Assembly (NCBI GenBank): GCA_028826165.1
Contig: JAPDFW010000076.1
Span: 186,001-250,000, forward strand
Reading direction: 5' to 3'
Origin: Anaeramoeba ignava BMAN
Lineage: Eukaryota; Protista; Anaeramoebae
Length of the DNA stretch: 64,000 nucleotides
Made by a program: the position numbers and the translations under genes. How positions within the stretch are numbered: the stretch's first letter is position 1; every line of letters starts with the position of its first letter. Positions 4,703-28,344 of the stretch are shown piece by piece. The notes beneath the pieces were generated by a model. That model was not told the DNA's origin. It searched no databases and was given only the letters and a program-made list of their open reading frames with translations.

Positions 4703-7700
4703 ATGAAACAGCACGTTTTCGTGCTTGTAATAATTTTAATAATAAAACTAAGTGAGGCATGTATGCCAATTTCCCAACTTTTTGGGTCAAAATACTTTAG
4801 CGATTGTCATGATATTCATCTTGACGCATCACTTTCTTTTGGAGCCAATCTGACCTTTGAATGGGATTCTTCAGACCCTTCTCTACTTGAATATTGCGAA
4901 GGAATGACATGCAACATTCCATATTCAGCACATAATATGGAAGCATATGAATTCAATGTAACTGTCAAAGATGTTTTCGGAAACAATTCGACATCAACGT
5001 TTAATACTCAAAATGTAACTGATTCTGCGCCGTTAATTTTTATACCTTCTCCTTCAAGTTTTCAAGTCACAAAAAACTTCAATTACACCTTTAATTCTTT
5101 TATTGAGCCAAGTTGTATTAATTCAACGAATCCTCAAGTTTATTGGGTTCTTTTTGATGAAAACGACCAAATTTATTGGCTAGATGATTTTGGTATTATT
5201 GATAATCAAAGAACTTTAGAGATTAATTTTTGTGATGTTGATGTGGCAAATATGACACAATTTAAACTTGTGTTATTTTCTGAATTGATGGAAAGTAGTA
5301 CCTTAAATTATAATAACGATTTAAATGATAAAATCGATAAAAATTATAATAACGATTTAAATGATAAAAACGATTTAAATGATAAAATCGATTTAATTCA
5401 CAAAAATGGCAAAAATGACAATTATAAAATCTATTTAGAAAATTATAAAATCTATAAAAATAACCTCAAACTGCAAACAATCCAATGCCTAAGTTCTATA
5501 ACTTCTCCTTCTCAAATACTTTCTAACCAAACTTCTATTGGTATTTGCAGAAATATCACACTCCAATTCAATCCAAAAGAAATACAAATAAAATTCCAAG
5601 GAGGAAGTTACCGAGAAATCCCGTATTTGAACCTGTTTCAAATCGATGCATCAGAAACAACAGATCCAGATATCTGCTCTGATGATCAATTAAGCTTATT
5701 AAATTTCTCGTGGGAATGCTTCTATTTTGACAACATAACAAATTGCTTTACAGGAAACCCTTTTAGCGACCAACCAGTAATCACAATCAACTCGGCATCC
5801 TTTCCATCAACAGGAGTATATTATTTTGATCTTACAGTAACATCTCCAGATGGGAAGAACGCATCATCTCGCGTTGCTATTAACATAACAGCTGATTTTG
5901 TTGCTCCTCAAGTTTTAATCAGCATAAATTCCGAAGAGCAATTCTTCAATTCTTCGCCAAATTCTGTCCTTGCCAAATCAAGAGTCATCCTGCAGGGATT
6001 TGTTGACGGATTCGCAAGTAAAATTGACGAATATTCATTTCTTGTTTTTTCTTGGGCAATCGAAGACTCAGGAAAAGATACAAATATAAGCATCAACGAT
6101 GCCACAAAATTCCCTTCAGGATTCCAATCGGATTTTCTCGCAATCAATGGATATTCTTTGCAGCCAAATAACACATATAAATTTGTTCTGAAAGTCTGCT
6201 CCAAAAGCAACTCAACAATTTGTGGATCAGCTAAAGCATATCTGGATGTTTTTGCATCTCCTGAATTCGGATGCTTGATAAACAACTCGTTGAATGAGAT
6301 GAATGTGAGTGATTTCAACACCTCATATTTCTTGGCAAAAACAAATCTGGAAGTCGAATCTGTGGATTTGCTTCCGATCATATCGCAATATTGGATTTCC
6401 TGGGATAATTTGCCAATCTCTTTGGATTCTCACCAAATATTCTCTCAGCTCACTACAGCCTCGCTAATGAATCTTGTCGAAATCAATATTCTTCCTCCTG
6501 GGCAAATCACGCTTCTGTTTGCTCAAATGAACGCAGAAAAAATATCCTCGTTTCAAATTATCAACATGACTTTGGAATATCCAAATTTTTCATCACCCAG
6601 TGATTGCGCAACTTTCATTCTTGCGAAACAAGAAGAATATCTTTCCAGTTTAGCATCAATCCCCATTAAGGACGAAACGTCGCAGTCAGAATTCCACAAC
6701 TTTAAATTTGTAGAAACCTTTTATTCCTTGGCAAATGTAACTCCTCAGTTACTCAACCAATACGTGATTCTTGATACCTTGATTTTGATTATGAACTACT
6801 ACGAAACATCTTTTTCATCGTCTTTACTCACTCAAGTTCGCGATGAATTGATCCAATCGCTGCAGCTTCTTGATTCTGGAATCTCTGCAAAGCAAAGCTC
6901 ATCGCGCCATAAAATCACCCAATCCATCCTTGATGCCTTCATTTCAATTCGCTTTTTTCTCACCTCGAATATTTCTTATTCTTCTTACCATCTTGATCTA
7001 CTGCTTGACGAAATGCTTGATTTAATTGAGATGGATTGCTCAAACGACTCAACAGACACATTACCCTTGATTCCAAACGAAATGGAGTTTGGAATTGCAA
7101 ATATTGTGCTGGATTCAATCGATTACATATATCTCAATTCACTTGGAATCTCAGAAAGTCATTCGGACTCAATCACCGAACTCTTTTCCAAAACAACTTC
7201 TCGGATTCTGAGCCATAACTTGTGTCCCCAAAGCGTATTTCTTCCAGAATTCAACCAATTCCACGCAAATTTAACAAATATTTATGGATGGAATCTAAAT
7301 ACAACATTCGAAAGTCCCGAATCAAATAGCGGGCAGAAAATGACTTTCTATTTCCCCGAAGAAGGAATATTCGAGAATCAAGGTTATCACACCGAATGCA
7401 TTTCCGTTGTTTCTGCAGTTTTTGAATCTGATCCTTTCAACGGACAATCACCTTCAAAACAATATCCAGCATCAAATGTCTTTTCCTTAAACATGTTTCT
7501 TCATTCAAACACATCCCAAGAAATCACTTCAGTGTCAGAAACCTTTATTTTTGACATCCCCGTTCACACACACGGAGATACAAGCTTTGAGTGCGGATAT
7601 TGGGATTCAAAAACAAACTCATGGAAAACAGACGATACTTCAAAAATACGCACTTTGGGCATCAATAATAAAAACGGTCGTCTTGAATGTGAATCTCAAG

Positions 7701-11354: not shown

Positions 11355-14080
11355 GATTAAATAGATTAATAAATTGGATTAATAAATTGATTAATAAATT
11401 AGATTAATAAATTAGATTAATAAATTAGATTAATAAATTAATTAATAAATTTGATTAATAAATTAGATTAATAAATTAGATTAATAAATTAGATTAATAA
11501 ATTGATTAATAAATTAGATTAATAAATTGAATTAATAAATTGAATTAATAAATTGAATTAATAAATTGAATTAATAAATTGGATTAATAAATTAGATTAA
11601 TAAATTAGATTAATAAATTGGATTAATAAATTGGATTAATAAATTGGATTAATAAATTTGATTAATAAATTGGATTAATAAATTAATAAATTAATAAATT
11701 GAATTAATAAATTGATTAATAAAATTGATTAATAAATTGAAAAAAAATTGATTAATAAATTCAAAAAGAAGAAGAAGAATGAGATAAATAAATTGATTAA
11801 TAAATTGGATTAATAAATTGAATTAATAAATTGGATTATTAATTAATAAATTTGATTAATAAATTGATTAATAAATTGGATTAATAAATTAGATTAATAA
11901 ATTGAATTAATAAATTGAATTAATAAATTGAATAATAAATTGATTAATAAAAATTAAATTAATAAATTTGGATTAATAAATTAGATTAATAAATTGATTA
12001 ATAAATTGGATTAATAAATTGATTAATAAATTGGATTAATAAATTAGATTAATAAATTGGATTAATAAATTGATTAATAAATTGAATTAATAAATTGAAT
12101 TAATAAATTGAATTAATAAATTGAATTAATAAATTGGATTAATAAATTGGATTAATAAATTAATAAATTGATTAATAAATTGATTAATAAATTGATTAAT
12201 AAATTGAATTAATAAATTGGATTAATAAATTGAAATTGATTAATAAATTGAATTAATAAATTGATTAATAAATTGGATTAATAAATTGGATTAATAAATT
12301 AGATTAATAAATTGGATTAATAAATTGGATTAATAAATTAGATTAATAAATTAAATTGGATTAATAATAAATTAGATTAATAAATTGGATTAATAAATTT
12401 GAATAATAAAAATTAAATTAATTAATAAATTAGATTAATAAATTAAATTAATAAATTGGATTAATAAATTGATTAATAAATTGAATTAATAAATTGATTA
12501 ATAAAATGTAATTGAATTAATAAATTGGATTAATAAATTGGATTAATAAAATTAGATTAATAAATTAGATTAATAAATAAATTAGATTAATAAATTGGAA
12601 TTAATAAATTAAATTAAAAAATTGGATTAATAAATTTGATTAATAAATTGATTAAATAAATTGATTAATAAATTGGATTAATAAATTGGATTAATAAATT
12701 TGATTAATAAATAGATTAATAAATTGATTAAATAAATTTGATTAATAAATTGATTAATAAAATTGATTAATAAAATTTTTAAATTGATTAAATAAAATTG
12801 GATTAAAATTAATTAATAAATTAATTAATAAATTGAATTAATAAATTAAAAATGATTAATAAATTAGATTAATAAAATTGATTAATAAATTAAATTAATA
12901 AATTTGATTAATAAATTGATTAATAAAAATTAAATAAATTGAAAATAAAATTGATTGTAAATTAAAAATTTGATTAATAAATTTGATTTAAATTAAATTA
13001 AAAATTAAATTAAATAAAAAATAAATTAATAAAACAAAAATTAAATTATAAATAAATTAAATAAAACAAAATAAATTAAAATAAATTGATTAATAAAATT
13101 AATTAATAAATGGATTAATAAAATTGATTAATAAATTAAATTAATAAATTGGATTAATAAATTAATTAATAAATTAGATTAATAAATTTGATTAATAAAT
13201 TGATTAAATAAATTAATTAATAAATTTGATTAATAAATTGATTAATAAATTGATTAATAAATTTGATTAATAAATTGGATTAATAAATTGATTAATAAAT
13301 TGATTAATAAATTTGATTAATAAATTGGATTAATAAATTGGATTAATAAATTGGATTAATAAATTGGATTAATAAATTGGATTAATAAATTGAATTAAAT
13401 AAATTAAATAATAAAATTTAAATAAAAATTGATTAATAAATTAAATTAATAAATTGAATTTAATAAATTTGATTAATAAATTAGATTAATAAATTGATTA
13501 ATAAATTGGATTAATAAAATTGGATTAAATTAACAAATTAGATTAATAAATTGGATTAATAAATTGAATAAATAAATTTTAATTGTAAAATTAATAAATT
13601 AATTAATAAATTAACAATAAATTAGATTAATAAATTGGATTTAATAAATTGAATTAATAAATTGATTAATAAATTAGATTAATAAATTGGATTAATAAAT
13701 TGGATTAATAAATTGGATTAATAAATTAGATTAATAAATTAATTAATAAATTAGATTAATAAATTGGATTAATAAATTGGATTAATAAATTGGATTAATA
13801 AATTAGATTAATAAATTAATTAATAAATTAGATTAATAAATTTGATTAATAAATTAGATTAATAAATTGGATTAATAAATTGGATTAATAAATTGGATTA
13901 ATAAATTGAATTAATAAATTTGATTAATAAATTAGATTAATAAATTGAATTAATAAATTTGATTAATAAATTTGATTAATAAATTAGATTAATAAATTAG
14001 ATTAATAAATTGATTAATAAATTGGATTAATAAATTGGATTAATGAATGAGATTAATAAAATTGATTAATAAATTAGATT
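11355..14080. repeat. ~2.7-kb array of a 13-bp unit (ATTAATAAATTGG / ATTAATAAATTAG) between divergent genes
   Basis: Tandem repeat, roughly 200 units by length, with a degenerate middle. Confidence 0.95.
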
Positions 14081-24945: not shown

Positions 24946-27900
24946 TTATTTAAATTTAGTTTTTAATCCTTCAATTTGATCATCAAAACTTGAATCAGGA
25001 TTTAATCGGTAAAATTCAACTGCATCTTCAATTTCTTCAACTTTTTCAAGTGTCATTAATGGATCTAATTTATCAGTATATAAGAAATTAATAAAGAATT
25101 CCATTGCTTCTTTACTTTTTTCACTATAATCATGAACCTCATTTGATGAATCGTTCACACTAAGAAACATTTCTCTAAAAAGACCACTTCTAGCAAGTAA
25201 AACAACACTATGAACATTAATTCTAGTTTCTGCACAAATTATTGAAAAATCAGCTGAACTTCGATTATCATATGCTTTTTTGAGATCACGTAGTAATCCT
25301 TTTTTATATGCCTTTTCTTCCCAATTAATCCCGATTTCTTTGCAAATTTCTTCAATTACTGATGATGATATCTTTTTGTTCACATTTCCTGAATAAATAA
25401 ACTCAATAAACGCTTTCACTTCTTCATCTGTTCGATTCCCAAGAACTTCAGCAACTTTGTTTAATTTATCTTCTCCAATTCGAATTTTCAACATTGAAGA
25501 ATGAACAAAATATGATCCTTCTTTTGAGTGTATTTTCAAATCACATTTTTCTTGTCTTTGGAATATTCCATAAAAATCTTCATTATAACTATTAAATTTC
25601 TTTAAAATAATTGTTGGAATATAAGATCTTCTATTGTAATCAAGTGGTGTCATTCTCTTTTAAACAAAATTAAACAAAAACAAAAGCAATTTGAATATTT
25701 CTAATTCCCAATTTAAATAATAATTTTAATAATAATATTACAAACTATTCCATTAAAAAGAAAAGTTTTTTTTTATTATTTTTTTTTCTAAATTTTTATT
25801 TTTATTTTTACATTCTAAAAAAATTTTTTGGAAATTAAAATTTTCTTTTCTTTTCTTTTCTTTTCTTTTCTTTTCTTTTCAAACATTTTCAATTGATAAA
25901 TCAGCTCCTGCATTCAATAAAACTTGAATAATTTCAAAAGGAAGAGAATACCAAAAACATAAGTGAAGTGGAGTATTTCCCTAATAAGTTTTTTACTTAT
26001 TTTTTTTAATACAATTTATTTTCATTTTCTCTAAATTTTATTTACATTCTTCAATTATAACAAATTTTCAAAATGAATACAATTTATTCTAAATAAATTT
26101 TTTTTTAATTTTTAAAATAAACAAACTTTCTATTATTTTTTTTTCAAATTAATAAATAGATTAATAAATAAATTAATAATTTTTATTATACATTTTGTAA
26201 ATTGACATCTGCTCCTGAATTAATAAGATAAGTAAAAATATCTTTTTCTTTGTTATTTTGACAAAGAAGATGAAGTGGTGTATTTCCCTAATAATAATTT
26301 TTTTTTAATTATAGATTAGTTTTATTTTTATTTTTGAAAAAAAAGATAAATAAAATTTCTTAATTACAAACTATTTGGAAAAAACAAAAATAAACATTAA
26401 ATTTAAAACAAAACAAAACCAAAAATATTTTTGTATTTTACTTCCTTTTTTATTTAGAAATAAATTTTAGATATTTTCTAAATAAATAAAAAAAAATTAT
26501 TTAATAAAAATTTTACATTCTGTTCATTAACATCTAATCCTAATTCAATTAAATATTTGATCATTTGGAGATCTCGACTTTTTTGGCAATAAGAATGAAG
26601 AAGAGTAGAACCCTATTTATTAAATTAAATTAAATTATTTTTATTTTTAAATATGAAAGAAAATTTTACAATCTAATTAAATTTTATCCAAAAAAAAAAA
26701 AAAACAATCAAAAATCTTTTTCTTTTGTTCTTATTAAAAATTTCTTAAAAAAATTACAGCCTAATTAATTCCCAAAAATTAATCTTTTTGTTCTTTTTTT
26801 TTTTTTTATAAAAAGAAAGAAAAAAAAAATTACATCTTTCATTTTGCAATCAAAGTTTTTTGAAATGAGAAAATTGATAATTTCAGTACTTGAACCAGAA
26901 TCTGTATTAATATAAGATAAATTGAATCCCTAATAAAAAAAAATATTATGATATTAATATCATTAATAGAAATATTTTTTATTTTGATCTGTTAAGATCA
27001 ATTTACTTTTTTATCTTTTAAAATATCTTCACTGTAAAGCATTTTTACTAAATCAATTGATTTGGAATTGATACAAGCATAATCAAAAGGAGTATATCCC
27101 TTTTTGTTTTTATAATATAAGTAATTAAAAAGATCGAATAAGAGATGAAAAATAAAATTTACAAACTAATAAATGATAAAATTAATTATTTAAAGAAATT
27201 TGAAAATTAACAAATTATATTTTACGTTCTATTGAAAAATATTTTTTTTTAAGTTTTAGAAAATTTTTCAAAAATTTTGTTCTTCTTTTCTTTTTTTTTG
27301 GTTTACATTAGTTGCTGTTAAGGAAGAATTCTTTTCAAATACTATCTTAACTAACTCTTTATTTCCTGTACGTGCTGCAATATGAAGAATTGTATCATTC
27401 TATTTATTTCCACAAAAAAAAAGTTATTTAAATATTTCCTAATAAAAATATTAATAAAAATACATTCTAAAAATGAATTAGAAATAATTTTAATTAAAAT
27501 ATAAATTAGCAAATAATAAAATAATGGAATACAATCTAAATCATTTTGAAAATGAATATAAGAGAATTTTGGAATAAATAAAAGTAATTTTTTTTTCACT
27601 GTTTTAATAGATGTATCTGCTCCTTTTGAAAGTAAAAAAATAACATTTGGAATGATTTGTTTTTTAATTGCATAAAATAATGGTGTTTCTCCCTTAAAAT
27701 GAAATTAAATAAAATAAGATTAAAATGATTTTATTTATTCAAATTTAAAAATTACAAACTAAAAGAAAATTGATGATTTAATTAATTAATTAAAAAAAAA
27801 GGAAAACTCTTTTTTATATTTTTATATTTATTTTTCTTTTACTTTCTATTAATAAAAAAGAAATCATTTTAAATCAAAAAAGAGAATTTTCTTTTTTTTT

Positions 27901-28344
27901 TTTTAGAATTACATTTTTTGAATTAATATCAAAATGTTTAAGACCAAATTGGAGAACTTCATCTGTTTGAGGAAGTTTGCAAATATAATGAAGCAAAGTA
28001 TTATTTTTCTATTAAAATTTCAAATTAAATTAAATTAAATCAAAAATAATTTAGAATTTTTTTTATTTTATTTTATTTTTTGGATTAAAATACTTTAGAA
28101 GAAAATTTAAAAGATTTTTTTTCAATCATATTTTGAATAACTGTAAGAGCACCATCCTTAGTTAAATGAGCTGCACATTTAAATATCTATATTAAAATAA
28201 AAAGAATATTTTAAATTTGCTTTTTGCTTTTTCTTCTTTTTTTTTGAATTTAAATAAAATAAAATTAAATACCCAATGTTGATCGTTATTAGAAATATTA
28301 GGTTTTTCTGAATGTTCTTTTAAAGTTTTTACTTGATAAGACAT
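24946..28344 (-). CDS. Ankyrin-repeat + tandem BTB/POZ protein; 11 ordinary exons (28344-28273, 28186-28094, 28008-27913, 27692-27600, 27399-27307, 27099-27007, 26929-26834, 26612-26517, 26287-26192, 25980-25885, 25656-24946) plus 14 3-nt microexons
   Basis: The 93/96-nt phase-0 exons each encode one ankyrin repeat (e.g. GNTPLHLLCQNNKEKDIFTYLINSGADVNLQN). The last exon has BTB motifs (ADFSIIC...VHSVVLLARSGLFREMF...FINFLYTD). Confidence 0.9.
25742..27845 (-). other. Array of 14 single-codon microexons (AG|NNN|GT), two per ankyrin-repeat junction
   Basis: 27845-43 AAA, 27758-56 TTT; 27535-33 ATT, 27466-64 AAT; 27228-26 AAC, 27165-63 TTT; 26760-58 GCT, 26672-70 ATT; 26444-42 GAA, 26370-68 TTT; 26129-27 AAA, 26048-46 AAT; 25814-12 AAT, 25744-42 TTT. 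Separating introns are 57-85 nt. Confidence 0.88.

Follow-up and report, generated by a model that had tools for sequence, protein, structure and literature searches.

Genes with one exon per repeat are known for the vertebrate ankyrins, and in schistosomes the micro-exon genes (MEGs) encode secreted proteins for the most part through alternatively spliced exons of 6–36 nt. Even shorter, the zero-length exons of recursive splicing are passed at AG-GT ratchet points. Exons of 3 nt are known from human RPS24 and Drosophila homothorax, and plants contain approximately 100–235 coding microexons (≤15 nt) per genome; these known cases are isolated, with an occasional adjacent pair (5 + 12 nt in rice) (PMC8831610, PMC7392893, PMC12207440). 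A literature search for tandem, adjacent or 3-nt microexons likewise returned only isolated animal and plant cases. The stretch of DNA analyzed in this study (the window) comprises 64,000 nt of contig JAPDFW010000076.1 (positions 186,001–250,000; contig C77 of the 42.8-Mb assembly GCA_028826165.1) of the anaerobic metamonad Anaeramoeba ignava BMAN and carries an ankyrin-BTB gene in which seven of the gaps between repeat exons each contain a pair of candidate exons that consist of a single codon.

The gene is likely an intact ankyrin-BTB gene whose single-codon hairpin exons are spliced constitutively, an old trait that was spread by duplication and that does not serve as a device for diversification. 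The A. ignava genome is 80.65% A+T, its introns are 91.86% A+T (10.1101/2023.03.03.530753) and more than 30,000 introns are present (10.64898/2026.04.11.717937). Microexons are not mentioned in the Anaeramoeba genome papers (including 10.1101/2023.03.03.530753), the intein paper or the A. pumila preprint. The support at the RNA level that is obtained here through transcript-derived open reading frames (ORFs) of paralogs is a new element.

Organization of the Ankyrin-BTB Gene

The ankyrin-BTB gene is located on the minus strand (28344–24946) and was reconstructed with 25 exons and a coding sequence of 1677 nt without internal stop codons. Eleven exons are of ordinary size (72, 93 or 96 nt; 711 nt for the last exon) and the remaining 14 are exons of 3 nt that form seven pairs. 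The exons are as follows, with the basis of each assignment in parentheses:

28273–28344, minus: exon 1, 72 nt, start codon at 28344 (open frame, GT donor)
28094–28186, minus: exon 2, 93 nt, N-terminal ankyrin-like cap (exon model)
27913–28008, minus: exon 3, 96 nt, ankyrin repeat; exons 2 and 3 themselves encode its hairpin residues, no microexon before it (exon model)
27843–27845, minus: pair 1 first, 3-nt exon AAA (K) (taatag-AAA-gtaaaa)
27756–27758, minus: pair 1 second, 3-nt exon TTT (F) (ttttag-TTT-gtaatt)
27600–27692, minus: ankyrin exon, 93 nt (Pfam Ank positions 2–31 of 33)
27533–27535, minus: pair 2 first, 3-nt exon ATT (I) (AG-NNN-GT listing and exon model)
27464–27466, minus: pair 2 second, 3-nt exon AAT (N) (AG-NNN-GT listing and exon model)
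27307–27399, minus: ankyrin exon, 93 nt (Ank positions 3–31)
27226–27228, minus: pair 3 first, 3-nt exon AAC (N) (AG-NNN-GT listing and exon model)
27163–27165, minus: pair 3 second, 3-nt exon TTT (F) (AG-NNN-GT listing and exon model)
27007–27099, minus: ankyrin exon, 93 nt (weak Ank match)
26834–26929, minus: degenerate repeat exon, 96 nt; the one intron before it (77 nt) is the control junction (exon model, spacer count)
26758–26760, minus: pair 4 first, 3-nt exon GCT (A) (AG-NNN-GT listing and exon model)
26670–26672, minus: pair 4 second, 3-nt exon ATT (I) (AG-NNN-GT listing and exon model)
26517–26612, minus: ankyrin exon, 96 nt (Ank positions 2–32)
26442–26444, minus: pair 5 first, 3-nt exon GAA (E) (AG-NNN-GT listing and exon model)
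26368–26370, minus: pair 5 second, 3-nt exon TTT (F) (AG-NNN-GT listing and exon model)
26192–26287, minus: ankyrin exon, 96 nt (Ank E = 2.2e-8, positions 2–32)
26127–26129, minus: pair 6 first, 3-nt exon AAA (K), with an overlapping alternative TTT at 26123–26125 (AG-NNN-GT listing)
26046–26048, minus: pair 6 second, 3-nt exon AAT (N) (AG-NNN-GT listing and exon model)
25885–25980, minus: ankyrin exon, 96 nt (Ank positions 2–32)
25812–25814, minus: pair 7 first, 3-nt exon AAT (N) (AG-NNN-GT listing and exon model)
25742–25744, minus: pair 7 second, 3-nt exon TTT (F) (AG-NNN-GT listing and exon model)
24946–25656, minus: last exon, 711 nt including the stop codon; end of the ankyrin array, BTB-like stretch, BTB/POZ (PF00651; at least 151 paralogous copies in the genome)

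All 14 triplets are bounded by AG and GT, and the consensus signals match those of the ordinary introns. The 24 introns measure 57–86 nt; the sub-introns around the triplets (57–85 nt) are similar in size to the three triplet-free introns (86, 85, and 77 nt). A preliminary description of the locus had proposed this organization, and its coordinates and peptides were all reproduced by reading the minus strand and rebuilding the exon model. The agreement extends to the seven pairs of AG-NNN-GT triplets that divide the gaps into introns of 57–85 nt, to the phase 0 of every junction and to the internal control, a junction (27006–26930) that holds a single triplet-free intron of 77 nt. Junction 6 is ambiguous in that AG-TTT-GT (26125–26123) overlaps and competes with AG-AAA-GT (26129–26127); the AAA codon (K) is preferred based on its TAG acceptor and on the usage within the family.

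The triplets in the window gene are non-random. A total of 15 AG-N3-GT sites is observed within the seven gaps, compared with a mean of 1.23 and a maximum of 6 in 5000 dinucleotide-preserving shuffles, and the shuffle probability of two or more such sites in one gap is 0.013. Each of the other spacer lengths from 0 to 9 nt occurs once or not at all in the seven gaps, and AG immediately before GT (k = 0, the form of a recursive splice site) has no occurrence there. On both strands of the 64-kb window, 14 AG-N3-GT sites have flanks of at least 85% A+T, and 12 of the 14 belong to the ankyrin-BTB gene (including the overlapping alternative at junction 6).

Repeat Spacing and Domain Architecture

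Matches to the Pfam ankyrin profile (Ank, PF00023) were obtained for six of the repeat exons at model positions 2–31/32 of 33 (best E = 2.2e-8), and the matches carry the G-x-T-P-L-H motif that identifies them as ankyrin repeats. As the large exons cover only these positions, two residues per repeat are missing unless the triplets are included: without the triplets, model positions 33 and 1 are absent from the repeats, and the 33-residue periodicity holds only if both single-codon exons are counted (31/32 + 2 residues). The Pfam coverage of the large exons thus bears out the initial claim that the triplets restore the ankyrin consensus spacing, and it supports the view that the triplets behave as real exons, which would contribute two residues between Ank model positions 32 and 2. 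In the consensus design of the designed ankyrin repeat proteins (DARPins), positions 2, 3, 5, 13, 14, and 33 are randomized and the hairpin tip contacts the targets. The microexon codons occupy what we take to be DARPin positions 2 and 3, at the hairpin tip before G-x-T-P-L-H. As general background, the structural point made in the preliminary description, that these residues contact targets and are randomized in DARPin libraries, is correct.

The last exon encodes a BTB/POZ domain (PF00651, residues 127–218, E = 5.3e-15) that scores 56 bits against a curated cut-off of 20.5. The connection of BTB domains to Cullin is ordinary domain knowledge, and cullin genes were found in the A. ignava genome. 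The combination of BTB and ankyrin domains fits a predicted Cullin-3 substrate adaptor, and judged by this architecture a role as an E3 adaptor is plausible.

Distribution of Single-Codon Exons within the Gene Family

Matches to the BTB exon were identified at no fewer than 151 loci of the assembly, with 31–53% identity. Paralogs that are approximately 40% identical contain the same triplet pairs between their 93/96-nt ankyrin exons, and they do so on the gene strand only. The layout is shared by paralogs that are only 35–41% identical within the BTB exon and is therefore old.

A census was conducted in 23 gene regions (111.6 kb) in which AT-flanked AG-Nk-GT sites were counted. For k = 3, the census identified 201 sense and 13 antisense sites, and each other value of k from 0 to 15 gave 4–22 sites. 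The 201 triplets include no stop codon, compared with 9.7 expected from the position-specific base frequencies of the triplets (P = 4.6e-5) and 22 expected from the intron composition (P = 7e-11). Four AG-stop-GT sites are present in the census regions; they are found in ordinary donor contexts or within exons and none of the four is AT-flanked on both sides. The majority of the junctions between consecutive ankyrin exons (79 out of 117) contain exactly two triplets (median gap 218 nt) and a further 12 contain one triplet (median gap 140 nt), such that gaps with more triplets are longer. The scan for AG-NNN-GT pairs in paralogs that had been proposed at the outset thus recovered the pairs widely within the family. 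The three classes of introns have medians of 68, 71, and 68.5 nt and share a GTAAA donor and a T-rich TAG acceptor. The residues encoded by the census triplets are mostly N, K, D, F, R, and Y, which is the usage expected for ankyrin hairpins.

Hundreds of ankyrin genes with long uninterrupted frames (500–2000 amino acids; G000, many loci) exist alongside the class with one exon per repeat. The A. ignava genome therefore contains both intronless and heavily split ankyrin genes.

Transcript-Derived Proteins of Two Paralogs

Evidence at the RNA level was obtained from two transcriptome-derived ORFs in EukProt, P0152 and P0153. The P0152 protein (512 amino acids) has a name in the Trinity/TransDecoder style and belongs to the same protein cluster as the NCBI protein KAJ5078051.1 (P0008, 498 amino acids). 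The two proteins are identical except for seven insertions of two residues in P0152, all of which are located at ankyrin hairpins. When P0152 is mapped to its locus (the C56 paralog; G000:C56, L011), every one of the seven gaps holds two AG-NNN-GT triplets and no more, and the triplets encode 14 out of 14 inserted residues in the correct order (EF, ND, IR, DA, RG, NN, and KS). An origin of the P0152 transcript from a retrocopy was considered and rejected: the genome lacks an intronless version of the P0152 ankyrin region (43% identity for the best contiguous match), and the transcript therefore derives from the split locus.

At the locus of the second paralog (G000:C101, L020), P0153 can be traced exactly through a pair of 3-nt exons at six junctions and through one exon of 9 or 12 nt at three further junctions; three more junctions agree with P0153 apart from strain-level mismatches. 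The longer microexons of this gene encode RRF, IENI, and DESK (L020 4520–4528, 6090–6101, and 7314–7325; minus-strand coordinates of the reverse-complemented locus) and are confirmed by P0153. One gap of 964 nt in the same gene (L020 ~5054–5845) contains four AG-NNN-GT triplets, and the transcript includes only the first and the last (D and D). The inner two triplets are apparently not used, perhaps as a consequence of lying in inserted sequence.

Inclusion of the 3-nt exons in the mRNA is thus shown for two paralogs. Their transcript-derived ORFs carry 26 3-nt exons that are homologous to those of the window gene, and they contradict the NCBI models at 13 resolved junctions in the two genes. 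At least three NCBI models of the family (P0003, P0008, and P0014) join the large exons directly, as seen in KAJ5078051.1, KAJ5078719.1, and KAJ5068816.1, all of which omit the microexons. Two expectations from the preliminary description, that the organism routinely splices tandem 3-nt exons and that gene predictors miss them, are upheld by the two ORFs and by the three models, respectively. For the window gene itself, the sequence evidence together with these paralogs makes inclusion of the 3-nt exons in the mRNA very likely.

Genome-Wide Scale and Arrays with 3-nt Spacing

Throughout the genome, the counts of the motif TTAG-Nk-GTAA are 703 (k = 2), 1669 (k = 3), and 383 (k = 4). Given this excess at k = 3, and as 36% of the census triplets have the exact form TTAG-N3-GTAA, the number of single-codon exons would be in the order of roughly 3,000 per 43-Mb genome. 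The loose pattern AGNNNGTA-N50-80-AGNNNGTA is not enriched genome-wide (1493 matches compared with 1712 for the reversed pattern) and is too loose to be informative.

The genome also contains long arrays of near-identical intron-like units that are spaced by exactly 3 nt. One array (G000:C1:409405-413129, L012, minus strand) follows a BTB/coiled-coil gene and consists of more than 30 units of 3 nt plus an intron-like part of ~72 nt. The intron parts are 94.6% identical in pairwise comparisons and the 3-nt spacers 35% per base. All 32 spacers lack stop codons and keep the phase of the upstream exon, unique introns flank the first three spacers, and an (ATT)n microsatellite of ~1 kb breaks up the array. 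This array could be a tail with one codon per exon or an intron-derived minisatellite.

A second set of arrays is found in four tandem BTB-BACK-TLDc genes (G000:C1:1056000-1075000, L013+L014, minus strand), where a phase-1 intron after G-P-S-F-G is expanded to 13–27 units. All 79 spacers are 3 nt long and most of them are ATT, ATG, TTG, or CTT. Including them would add ~15 residues and no stop codon; the NCBI proteins P0295 and P0297 skip the whole array and have the canonical TLDc sequence. Overall, the arrays suggest that introns in the A. ignava genome can multiply at a spacing of 3 nt. The BTB-BACK-TLDc family has at least 224 proteins at E ≤ 1e-40 that are 55–78% identical to each other, and many of them carry the NCBI name “pep-cterm sorting domain-containing protein”, apparently through an erroneous transfer. 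The most extreme composition of the window is found at positions 12001–14000, where G+C falls to 8.7% and the GC skew reaches +0.95.

Alternative Explanations

The alternative that fares best is that the triplets are unused in the window gene, that each gap of 200–230 nt is one intron and that the repeats are 31/32 residues long. Several observations weigh in its favor and against constitutive inclusion. The NCBI models of the paralogs were built without the triplets, and AlphaFold2 folds the shortened ankyrin domain of a paralog equally well: with single-sequence input, the pLDDT (predicted local distance difference test) score was 74.7 with the microexon residues and 76.0 without them, such that the hairpin version is not favored and the models do not discriminate between the two. 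The TLDc arrays contain AG-NNN-GT units inside an intron that is annotated as one, and since skipping of the whole array gives the canonical TLDc protein, the motif alone is no proof of inclusion. Furthermore, a search with the last exon identified only the ORF of the window itself and no transcript-derived protein of the window gene, and a search with the last exon plus a longer paralog alignment, which was swamped by ankyrin words, likewise gave no such protein. A single transcript isoform per paralog is on record, so that little data stand behind constitutive inclusion. These points are outweighed by the ORFs from transcripts, which disagree with the NCBI models in both genes, by the normal size of the triplet-free introns (77–86 nt) together with the growth of the gaps with triplet number, and by the complete lack of stop codons, the strand specificity and the restriction to k = 3 of the enrichment within the census. 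Unused triplets in the window gene are accordingly considered very improbable.

The preliminary description had further suggested that the single-codon exons diversify the hairpins of a Cullin-RING substrate receptor, either by regulated skipping and mixing or by shuffling at the DNA level. A BTB domain is present and cullins are encoded in the genome, the microexons encode positions that are randomized in DARPin libraries, the residues at both hairpin positions differ across paralogs, and any skip would stay in frame as all junctions are in phase 0. However, both available transcripts include every resolved microexon, and no skipped isoform is present in the 90% protein cluster of the C56 paralog. 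Splicing cannot reorder exons, and skipping would shorten the loop and leave the residues unchanged. With regard to shuffling, the introns have no homology that is able to support recombination, and the hairpin residues are equally variable in paralogs that encode them within ordinary exons (P0019). The diversification of a ubiquitin-ligase receptor is thus not borne out and is judged to be very unlikely. Equally slim is the chance that regulated in-frame skipping of hairpin codons or repeat modules would generate a repertoire of ankyrin-BTB substrate receptors from each of hundreds of genes, in the manner of a naturally occurring DARPin library. The most parsimonious interpretation is that the gene structure is frozen, that its splicing is constitutive and that it was spread by the duplication of repeats and genes.

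Age and Origin of the Introns

In local alignments, the 24 introns of the window gene show no mutual similarity above that of shuffled sequence. The same holds for 210 introns of the family, the similarity of which equals that of shuffled controls and which do not resemble the units of the arrays. The introns have diverged to the level of base composition and the AG-NNN-GT frames persist, a pattern that marks old splice sites as being under purifying selection.

A homolog in A. flamelloides (P0122, L019, JAOAOG010000113.1:241320-269639) is an ankyrin-BTB gene that extends over 16 kb with introns from 107 nt to 6.8 kb. Most of its repeats are located inside large exons that include the hairpin residues, and the gene contains no single-codon exons; an excess at k = 3 is not seen in this one gene. 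All four introns are in phase 0 and lie directly before the two hairpin residues, which corresponds to the first intron position in A. ignava. This single homolog suggests that the second and third introns were gained in the A. ignava lineage.

It is highly doubtful that the flanking introns belong to a currently proliferating, introner-like family that inserts at 3-nt offsets and that the pairs in the window gene are recent: arrays of near-identical introns exactly 3 nt apart with hypervariable spacers and the A. flamelloides homolog with only the first of three intron positions are in line with such a scenario, but membership of the window-gene introns in such a family was rejected, as their alignment scores equal those of shuffled controls, the 24 gene introns and the 210 family introns are unlike the array units and the layout is present in distant paralogs.

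Proposed Mechanism and Implications

In the constitutive model that is favored here, each of the seven repeats would consist of a 93/96-nt exon and two single-codon exons with the residues of the beta-hairpin tip, and these exons are most likely spliced constitutively. Each intron of ~70 nt and ~90% A+T is equipped with a separate GTAAA donor and a separate T-rich TAG acceptor and would be recognized as a unit (intron definition), and the removal of three neighboring introns would therefore leave both codons in the mRNA. Each sub-intron is complete and of normal size, and in the two paralogs all three are removed and the codons kept. The introns are probably removed one after another, because a 3-nt exon would be unable to hold splicing complexes on both sides simultaneously; the order of removal is deduced from this constraint. 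The exon positions –3 to –1 would provide little information because 29 different codons occur among the census triplets. As repeats and genes were duplicated, the layout would have spread within the large families of ankyrin and ankyrin-BTB genes in A. ignava, and selection on splice sites and reading frame would maintain it.

Tandem 3-nt exons that are spliced constitutively at apparently thousands of sites stretch the known limits of exon size. They would provide a natural system to study how the spliceosome handles a 5' splice site that is located 3 nt past a 3' splice site, and the ordered removal of introns as in recursive splicing. In the published A. ignava proteome, many ankyrin proteins are systematically short of two residues in each repeat, and standard aligners and predictors will repeat such errors in other A+T-rich protists with short introns. 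The first-intron-only homolog in A. flamelloides and the young 3-nt-spaced arrays together hint at a mode of intron gain that is specific to the lineage.

Comparison with Known Systems

The two microexon codons match positions 2 and 3 of the hairpin tip in DARPins; the diversity of DARPins is synthetic and introduced at the DNA level, whereas the A. ignava exon structure is not seen to generate diversity. Like the schistosome MEGs, the window gene contains tandem, very short and symmetric exons that can be skipped without loss of frame. However, the 3-nt exons in A. ignava alternate with ordinary repeat exons in an intracellular-type ankyrin-BTB protein and no alternative splicing is seen. A classification as a schistosome-type micro-exon gene was rejected, as only 42 out of 1677 coding nt are contributed by microexons and no alternative isoform is on record.

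The animal and plant microexons resemble the A. ignava exons in being spliceosomal exons of a few nt between canonical GT-AG introns that are in frame, mostly located inside conserved domains and missed by annotation and aligners. They differ in that the single-codon exons of A. ignava are paired at almost every repeat and recur across a large family, with introns of ~70 nt and nothing that suggests regulation by tissue type. With recursive splicing the window gene shares a long gap that is probably removed stepwise and a 5' splice site that directly follows a 3' splice site; in A. ignava, 3 nt are kept as coding sequence at each step, and AG-GT without a spacer is absent from the seven gaps. 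Finally, as in the one-exon-per-repeat ankyrin genes, each repeat of 33 residues is represented by a single genomic module that is bounded in phase 0, which is the arrangement that growth by exon duplication would produce. In A. ignava, two additional introns set the codons of the hairpin tip apart and divide this module into 93/96 + 3 + 3 nt.

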